This document shows positions 50,734-53,540 of a DNA stretch of 64,000 nucleotides, piece after piece. Source of the DNA: Tubulanus polymorphus (lineage: Eukaryota > Animalia > Nemertea); the NCBI RefSeq assembly GCF_964204645.1, contig NC_134034.1:10304962-10368961 (forward strand), given 5' to 3'. Below the pieces are notes generated by a model that was not told the DNA's origin, ran no database searches, and saw only the letters and a list, made by a program, of their open reading frames with translations. The position numbers and the translations under genes were made by a program. The stretch's first letter is position 1. Every line of letters begins with the position of its first letter.

Positions 50734-52636
50734 TTACATGACGTCCATGAATTCGTTGTAATTGACGCGTCCGTCGCGGTCCTTATCGGCGGCGATTATC
50801 ATTCGTTTCACCTCCTCCTCGGTGAGGCCGGCTTTGACTCCGGCTTCTTGCAGTTCGGCTTCGGTTATGAAGCCGTTGCCGTCCGCGTCCAGAAGGCTGA
50901 AATTCACTCGTAGTTCAGCTTTCTGTTGCGCCGTTCTACAGGAATCGAGGAAGAAAGATAACTCGGTAAAAATCTATTTACGATTAAATACGATTTTCTG
51001 TAATCTATATAGTGATGAGCCTTTTATGGATAATGAGATGAGAAAAGAAACGATTAAAAGAAACGCGATATATTGTTACATATTCATATTGTGTTTCATA
51101 GAGGTGATCCTATTATAATGAATAATGAAAAAAGCGATTAAAGTAAAATCAATCTATTACAGATTGATGTTGTTATGGTTCAGAGACCCTTTCATAAAGA
51201 ATGAGAAAAATTAAACCGTATATAACCAGATTCACATGCTTATTCAGTAATCTTTAAAGAGCGACCCTTGCATTATAGCGAGCGCATATCATTGAGTACA
51301 TCCTGCATAACTGATCAAAATCTCACTCGGAGAACAGGTATATAAACTGCCTATTTTTGTGAAACGGTAACAGTAGTACGTGCCGTTTCTTCAAAGAAAA
51401 TCGAAAAACCGTCAGAATTATGGATACTGTCACTTCTAGGATTCATTAGTCCTTCACCCTGAAATCCCATATATATATATATATATATATATATATATAT
51501 ATATATATATATATATATATATATATATATATATATATATATATATATATATATATATATATATATATATATATATATATATATATATGACATCATTAGA
51601 TTATCTGGCTGCCACATAAAACTTGTGCATAAAACATATTGTGCTAATCATGATTTAGTCAATTTGGTCCGACCCAATACCGTACACTTGAATGAACTTA
51701 ACACTAGCGCCGCCTAGTAGACCCTCTATTGCCAAAGAAATATCACTAAATTAGGAGGCACACTAGAGCCACCTAGTACGTCGCCGAATGCCACAGTAGT
51801 TTAGGATATAGAGGAATGTATAGAGGAATGCCCTGCACTTACCTATGTTGTCTTTCTGACCTCTTCTTCAAAGACGCTTCGATTTCGTCCCATGAGATGT
51901 AGCCATCTTTGTTGTGGTCACCGTCTTTGATTATTTGCTGGAGTAAGATTGGGATAAAAAAGATGATCAAGATCTAAGGGAAAATATAAGTAATAACTGT
52001 TTACCGACGGATTCCGCGCCTAATAGTAGGATAGGCCTACACCGTATTCAGGGTAATCACATAGATTAGCTGTCAAGACAGGCTTTGTGTTCCGGGGTAC
52101 GATATTTTTTTACCAGGAATTTCTCATCAGATTCTATTAGAAATTACAGACAATTTAAGAAGCAAATCTAGAAACGAAATTTCAGGGTTGGTATCCTACT
52201 GCTCACTAGCACACCTGGCGGATCCTCACTTACCACAGTAGCAACTTGGCAATGTTGAAGAGATAGAATACCGACTAGCGCACCTAGCGGATCAACACTT
52301 GCAACAGTAGCATTTTGCCCAAAGATTTCAACTACGACTAGTGCAGCTGGCTTCGTGAGACTCACTAAATCATCAATATCTATAAGAAAAACGCTAAGTT
52401 ACCTCAATCTCTCCCGGTTCTGGTTTGAAACCCATTTCTTTGAAAGACGCAGCTACTTCGGACGCCTCGATGCGACCGTCGCCGTTCTTATCGAATTTAT
52501 CGAATGTGGCGCGACATCTTTTGATTTGTTCGTTCGACATTTCGTCTGCTTTACTAGGGGGCGCTGCTGAGGTGGTTTTCGTTGACGTTTCCTTAGTAAC
52601 CGCAGACTTAGCCGACTTGGTCGGAAGGCAACCCGT
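50734..52636 (-). CDS. Calmodulin-like four-EF-hand calcium-binding protein (first ATG at 52540; probable upstream ACG start at 52636)
   Basis: Exons: 52678-52403 (coding from 52636 or 52540), 51937-51843, 50935-50734. The EF loops are [36 protein letters not shown] and [12 protein letters not shown], and the protein ends EFMDVM*. Splice sites are canonical and phases consistent. Confidence 0.9.
51469..51588. repeat. (AT)n microsatellite
   Basis: Pure AT run. Confidence 0.97.
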
Positions 52637-53540
52637 GGTTAGTGTTTGGTCGAATGGTCGAATTGAAATTGATGATCTCTGAAGTGTTCTATAATACGGA
52701 AGATAGATTACAATGTGTTACGAAAATCGGATTTTAGAAAGTTCGAAATTTCGCTAGTTGCCAGATATCACGTAAACGAATATCTGTAAAAAATGTATAC
52801 ATGTATTAATGTATACATTTCGGTAAATTTCATCGAATTAGCCTACACACGGGTTTTGCTGAAAAGTCTTTCAGAAAAGAAATCGAGAGAATGGAAGATA
52901 GGATGAGGGAGGATGAAGATATTTTGAAAGATCGGAATGGTTTTTTTTTTAGTGTCTTCACTAAGCTGAAGGAAATTGATTTCTACTACGCTTTTGCTTT
53001 GGATTTTAAGGGTAAATCCTTATTTCACCCAAAGAACCCCTACGCATCACTCGTTTCAAAGTTTCGAATTTCCTTTTTCTCAATAAAGTAGGAAGTACTT
53101 GAGATTAAGTAGAACTCATCTGAATTCGATGATTTGAAAAATGGTAGTAACGAGACAAAATATGAAATAGCAAGATATCAAAGCGATACAGATTGATAAA
53201 AAAAAGAAAATCGAAAAGAGAAAATATTTCATACGGTAAGAATGCGTCAGAATATAACCGAAAAGAAACGAAGTGTGACATTTTAATAGTTAGGAATGAG
53301 ATTGCAACACGGCACCTTTAATGAGCAAAACCTACGGTACATTTTATTTTCCGACAACTTCGAAGTTTTGACTAAACTTAGTTGAACTAAAAGTTAGTTT
53401 GAAATGAAAAAGTTTAGTCGAAACTTTGAATCTGACAGATATGAAATTGCTTTCAAAACGTCAACTGTACTCGTTAACTCCTTAGAATACTGAGATGAGT
53501 ATGAGTTCCTGGCCAGTAACTTAAGCGGTTATATACGAAC

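Follow-up and report, generated by a model that had tools for sequence, protein, structure and literature searches.

The calmodulin-like gene described here, from the palaeonemertean ribbon worm Tubulanus polymorphus (Nemertea), carries upstream of its annotated start an in-frame ACG codon followed by what reads as a lipid-anchor signal. We incline to the view that this signal is fortuitous, or at any rate unselected, and that the gene is an ordinary one whose main conserved start is the AUG at 52540. It is well supported that the main product is the 144-aa protein initiated at this AUG, and use of the ACG would add at most a minor second isoform. The locus can at present be described, as far as its sequence allows, as an ordinary annotated gene with a candidate upstream ACG start. 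All positions refer to the window, the whole 64,000-nucleotide stretch of DNA that was analysed, in which the gene occupies the minus strand.

Either outcome has a bearing beyond this gene. If the ACG were used, it would provide a clear invertebrate case of near-cognate initiation making a lipid-anchored calcium-sensor isoform, by a mechanism known from HCK, and a new protein N-terminus would have been caught early, before an ATG evolved. If the arrangement is a coincidence, it is a caution that a convincing-looking acylation motif is to be expected behind a near-cognate codon about once every few genomes.

The gene and its annotated protein

The NCBI annotation gives for this locus an 'uncharacterized protein LOC141911743' (P0001) of 144 aa, which starts at ATG 52540 and is identical to our exon reading of the window (Table 1). 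This protein served as the spliced model, and the ACG extension was searched exon-wise, separately from exons 3 and 4. The exon translations match the Pfam families EF-hand_1, 5, 6 and 7, and four canonical 12-residue EF-hand loops of the D-x-[DN]-x-[DG]-G...E type are readable in the protein; these paired domains with canonical loops place it among the calmodulin-like EF-hand proteins. The nearest solved structures are calmodulins, matched over residues 2-144 at an E value of about 1e-22, and identity to calmodulins is about 35-40%. Calmodulins have four EF-hands in about 145-150 aa, and the Tubulanus protein resembles them in its four canonical loops and in the full length of the match. Membership of the NCS, calcineurin B or CBL subfamilies is not indicated, the best solved matches being calmodulins and the nearest proteins calmodulin-like. 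The conserved AUG would open a soluble calcium sensor of 144 aa with four coding-competent EF-hands.

Table 1. Positions of the features of the calmodulin-like gene and its 5' region in the window.
Feature	Position	Strand	Remarks
TATAAAA box, proposed promoter of short non-coding exon 1	53596..53602	-	direct reading; GC-rich flanks
Putative non-coding exon 1, 5' end a guess	53541..53570	-	ends at donor CAG/GTTCGT (53541/53540); no ATG
5' leader part of exon 2	52637..52688	-	3' of best acceptor candidate tattatag/A (52689/52688)
Candidate near-cognate start ACG	52634..52636	-	context AACC-ACG-G, in frame with ATG 52540
31-codon in-frame stretch GCLPTK...KADE, ACG to ATG	52541..52633	-	5' UTR or N-terminal extension
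Exon 2 coding part, annotated conserved ATG through EF-hand 1	52403..52540	-	
Exon 3, EF-hand 2	51843..51937	-	
Exon 4, EF-hands 3 and 4	50734..50935	-	coding 50935-50737, TAA stop 50736-50734

The upstream ACG and the peptide it would open

Direct reading of the minus strand gives ...ACTAACC-ACG-GGT-TGC-CTT-CCG-ACC-AAG..., in which the ACG at 52636-52634 stands 32 codons 5' of ATG 52540 and in the same frame, with zero stop codons between the two. The frame that holds the ACG is open upstream as far as a TAA at 52720-52718. The codon is flanked by A at -3 and G at +4, and it is the first near-cognate of the CUG/GUG/ACG class in the presumed leader to combine a purine at -3 with G at +4. With strong context, a shared frame and 31 stop-free codons before the ATG, the stretch has the sequence arrangement of a candidate near-cognate extension. 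The preliminary description of this DNA had given the same sequence, position and offset and had called the Kozak context optimal, and the peptide that it derived is identical on re-translation.

Read from the ACG, the extension has Gly2, Cys3, Thr6 and Lys7, with more lysines at positions 10, 15, 20 and 29. A PROSITE-style rule for N-myristoylation after the initiator Met is G-{EDRKHPFYW}-x-x-[STAGCN]-{P}. The segment G-C-L-P-T-K satisfies this pattern and has Cys at position 3, which bears out the earlier comparison with MGCxx(S/T)K-type N-termini. Cys3 would be a candidate for palmitoylation, and the lysines at 7, 10, 15, 20 and 29 would be expected to favour membrane binding.

N-terminal acylation is common among EF-hand sensors. 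It is known in plant CBL1 and CBL9 (MGCFHSK), NCS proteins, calcineurin B and CHP, all with AUG starts, and in the CBL, NCS, calcineurin B and CHP families the acylated N-terminus is part of a conserved architecture. A product read from the ACG would share the M-G-C-x-x-[ST]-K N-terminus with plant CBL1-type sensors. Unlike the NCS, calcineurin B and CBL proteins, however, the Tubulanus protein has calmodulins as its nearest solved relatives, and its own relatives lack the motif.

What could the gene gain from such a codon? A possible though doubtful answer is that one mRNA yields two sensors, a myristoylated and palmitoylated membrane protein of 176 aa initiated at the ACG and the cytosolic protein of 144 aa, and that the arrangement is a selected innovation of the Tubulanus lineage. 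Scanning ribosomes would start at the ACG with Met-tRNAi in a fraction of rounds, the Met would be removed, Gly2 myristoylated and Cys3 palmitoylated, and the strictness with which start codons are chosen would set the ratio of membrane-tethered to cytosolic sensor. The strong context AACC-ACG-G, the rank of the ACG as first strong near-cognate in the leader and the open frame behind it all favour this possibility. The very good quality of the motif, together with the frequent acylation of EF-hand sensors in general, also tells against a fortuitous origin.

The 5' leader and splice sites

Whether the ACG could be reached by a scanning ribosome depends on the structure of the 5' region. The TATA element at 53602 and the donor at 53540 that had been proposed to delimit an upstream exon are both present in the window. 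This donor agrees with the consensus at 5/7 positions, as many as the intron 2 donor of the annotated model. The exon had been described as free of ATG, and indeed no minus-strand ATG occurs between 53700 and 53342. Nor is there an ATG in any frame within 262 nt upstream of ATG 52540; the ATG-free leader agrees with a dual use of ACG and ATG and is one of the points that sit less well with a fortuitous motif. An upstream exon supplying an in-frame ATG, which would have made the ACG an internal codon, was searched for within 3.3 kb, and no ATG-bearing exon with compatible phase and a donor matching at least 5/7 consensus positions was found. In both of the frames that would connect it to the upstream candidate acceptors at 52689 and 52679, the putative exon 1 is interrupted by a stop, which makes an upstream in-frame ATG unlikely.

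Several acceptors could define the 5' end of exon 2. The candidate at 52689, with 12/16 pyrimidines before the AG, is the best by pyrimidine content; weaker candidates lie at 52554 (ccccctag/T) and at 52567, nearer to the position seen in the nemertean Lineus longissimus, where the ATG-bearing exon starts only about 25 nt before its ATG. Since the 5' end of exon 2 rests on these candidates, the ACG could be intronic. It is nevertheless improbable, and the least probable of the explanations considered here, that the ACG was never available as a start, either because it is removed with the intron (through an acceptor such as 52554) or because its Gly-Cys is internal to a protein begun at an in-frame ATG of an upstream exon. 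The acceptor position in Lineus speaks for the first variant, and the frame, open from the 52689 acceptor onward, would accommodate the second. The pyrimidine content of the 52689 acceptor argues against the one, while the stops in exon 1 and the failure to find an ATG exon within 3.3 kb argue against the other, and the NCBI model gives no longer protein. We infer that the ACG forms part of the leader and that a fortuitous motif follows it: ACG-GGT-TGC would most likely belong to the 5' leader and be in frame by chance.

Relatives and conservation of the start codon

An exhaustive HMMER search of 1.84 billion representatives ranked many multi-repeat EF-hand proteins at the top. Among the single-domain proteins the closest relative is the 'calmodulin-A-like' protein of Lineus longissimus (P0033, 146 aa), at 46% identity by HMMER and 45% by BLASTP, and next comes a protein of 144 aa from marine metatranscriptome contigs (P0056), 40% identical; these two and the Tubulanus protein form a small divergent group. 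The Tubulanus and Lineus proteins are collinear between Met1 and the VM at their C-terminus, apart from a single gap of two residues. A tblastx comparison of the Lineus locus with the window finds three coding exons in both, divided at boundaries that agree, and for each of the three the present locus gives the best match in T. polymorphus to the Lineus protein. As Met1 of the one protein is aligned to Met1 of the other, ATG 52540 is the counterpart of the Lineus start codon and can be taken as the ancestral start.

The extension has no such counterpart. The preliminary description had suggested aligning orthologs to look for a conserved non-AUG codon before GC...K; in Lineus the motif x-G-C-x-x-[ST]-[KR] is absent from the gene strand over 4 kb upstream of the ATG, as is any plausible M-G start of the myristoylation type. 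Two M-G matches occur in these 4 kb, one 1.6 kb upstream and the other on the opposite strand, neither with Cys3. In the marine relative, which is encoded on an unspliced-looking transcript contig, an in-frame TAG stands 11 codons before the ATG. None of the other family members retrieved has an MGC N-terminus, and no paralogue carrying the extension was found in the T. polymorphus genome. A word search with the extension and EF-hand 1 among 5.8 billion proteins matched only the NCBI protein itself, and one with the full protein gave no match of more than 37% identity. An exact-protein look-up found no transcript contig encoding P0001, and a scan of metagenomes and metatranscriptomes gave only distant EF-hand loci at 37-39% identity. 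Conservation of the extension as a protein is thus not seen in the Lineus genome or in the marine transcript. Because it is missing from these relatives, the extension is not ancestral to the small family and, were it real, would be confined to the Tubulanus lineage; the same absence weighs against a selected isoform and agrees with a fortuitous motif, which would be wanting in the one related genome examined.

The earlier statement that the gene starts at ACG can stand in part. An in-frame ACG in strong context exists, and the proposed mechanism makes biochemical sense, but the statement is too strong, given that ATG 52540 is conserved, as judged from Met1 of the Lineus protein and the upstream stop of the marine transcript. 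The same alignment bears on the idea that the reference is at fault. The ACG contains a CpG, a single transition at which turns ACG into ATG, and the true gene might have ATG at 52636-52634, the T having become C in the reference as a private allele or through an error of assembly, and the normal protein being an anchored one of 176 aa. Such a substitution would explain both the motif and the open frame without non-AUG initiation. No second haplotype copy of the locus is present in the assembly, and the agreement of the 144-aa Met1 with the Lineus Met1 leads us to consider an altered ATG unlikely, if a shade less so than an ACG that was never available.

Composition, codon usage and RNA fold

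About 20 nt before the ACG the GC content climbs from 0.30-0.38 to 0.55-0.60 and then holds at the coding level. The extension has a GC content of 0.54 and 7.5 CpG per 100 nt, compared with 0.42-0.55 and 4.3-11.6 in the coding exons of the gene and 0.33-0.42 and 3.2-3.9 in its introns. Its GC and CpG content is coding-like, which favours a translated extension; the jump before the ACG counts against a purely fortuitous motif. The leader part of exon 2 has a GC content of 0.39, and the 17 in-frame codons 5' of the ACG, at -0.64 bits per codon, look non-coding.

Codon usage is neutral. To train the log-likelihood of coding, 6,951 codons in T. polymorphus kinase and helicase exons were set against flanking non-coding DNA, and the extension scores -0.43 bits in total, a coding to non-coding likelihood ratio of 0.9, in a test confounded by the different composition of a disordered S/T/K/A linker and of globular domains. 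Stop-free non-coding windows of the same length have a mean of -3.4 (SD 6.5) and coding windows a mean of +4.7 (SD 5.6), and just 1.8% of the 31-codon windows taken from the coding sequence of the gene itself have a score as low as that of the extension. The RNA downstream of the ACG shows no significant fold (z = -1.1), only a 5-bp hairpin at +13 to +25. Neither the codon score nor the fold helps the case for a selected isoform, and the likelihood ratio is in keeping with a chance origin.

Chance expectation of the motif

How often would such a motif arise by chance? A six-frame scan of gene-flank DNA and the whole window, which is largely non-coding, found G-C-x-x-[ST]-K five times in 348,428 codon positions, or 1.4e-5 per position, one of the five being the present site. 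If the motif must also follow a near-cognate codon with a purine at -3, and if each gene is taken to offer about 18 leader codons in an open frame, we estimate roughly 2e-5 chance motifs per gene. A genome of 20,000 genes would then hold about 0.4 of them, and a set of some 200 EF-hand genes about 0.004. For the EF-hand gene family this is a striking coincidence, yet chance could still account for it in a scan as large as the present one: with about 0.4 to be expected per genome, a scan of thousands of windows should meet such a case. This expectation supports a fortuitous motif and weighs on the proposal of a selected one.

Initiation at near-cognate codons and the HCK precedent

The HCK kinase, with its p61 and p59 forms, makes two differently localised isoforms from two in-frame starts of one mRNA, and a reading of the ACG as a start would resemble it, which is a precedent for the two-sensor proposal. 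The upstream start of HCK is a CUG, and its isoforms, both acylated, differ in their acylation. The likeness is partial. The two HCK starts have been proven by experiment and are conserved among mammals, whereas the ACG is a candidate start read from the sequence; and both HCK isoforms are acylated, whereas here only the upstream form would be.

The myristoylation-type genes checked in this species give no sign of unusual initiation. Among five Arf/Arl controls from T. polymorphus, the four of myristoylation type all begin with ATG-GGN (4/4) and the fifth, an Arl-like gene, begins with MI; A stands at -3 at 5/5 of their ATG starts. With the four myristoylation-type genes all beginning in this way, there is no general oddity of the species at such starts, a point that accords with a fortuitous motif. 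The efficiency that an ACG can attain is more encouraging for the alternative. In mouse cells initiation at an ACG can be efficient when the context is strong and +4 is G (PMC5778536); in a complete-motif library the efficiency of ACG was as high as about 40% of that of a consensus AUG, and G at +4 raised it 7-fold (PMC5778536). With the leader as predicted, general scanning rules would make some initiation at the ACG likely, whether selected or not, and any resulting product would be a minor proteoform of putative function. Such occasional initiation would be compatible with our preferred reading, in which the conserved AUG provides the main protein and the motif behind the ACG is unselected.

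Repeats and other features of the locus and of related loci

Several further observations concern the surroundings of the gene and its relatives. A 9-mer, AGCAGACGA, lies just 5' of the ATG in both Lineus and T. polymorphus and may be a chance match. In the upstream sequence of Lineus longissimus (2600-2950), some 1.1-1.4 kb before the ATG, a unit of about 137 bp is directly repeated in about 2.5 copies. In T. polymorphus, many EF-hand exon matches fall within about 20 kb of contig C1 (2,803,000-2,822,100), suggesting a tandem calmodulin-like array, and kinase-domain matches of identical score and length at C36:93057-93527 and C10:8114542-8115012 suggest a retained haplotig or a recent duplicate.

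Within the window, a search of 50000-56000 found no Rfam family that reaches its gathering score. A perfect (AT)60 microsatellite lies at 51469-51588, in intron 3 of the calmodulin-like gene. A 69-bp tandem repeat of 7.3 copies (85% match) occupies 53889-54374, directly upstream of the putative promoter, and a 92-bp tandem repeat of 8.5 copies (96% match) extends over 54850-55629. On the minus strand, the copies of this second repeat carry a recurring short ATG...TGA/GTAAGA element.
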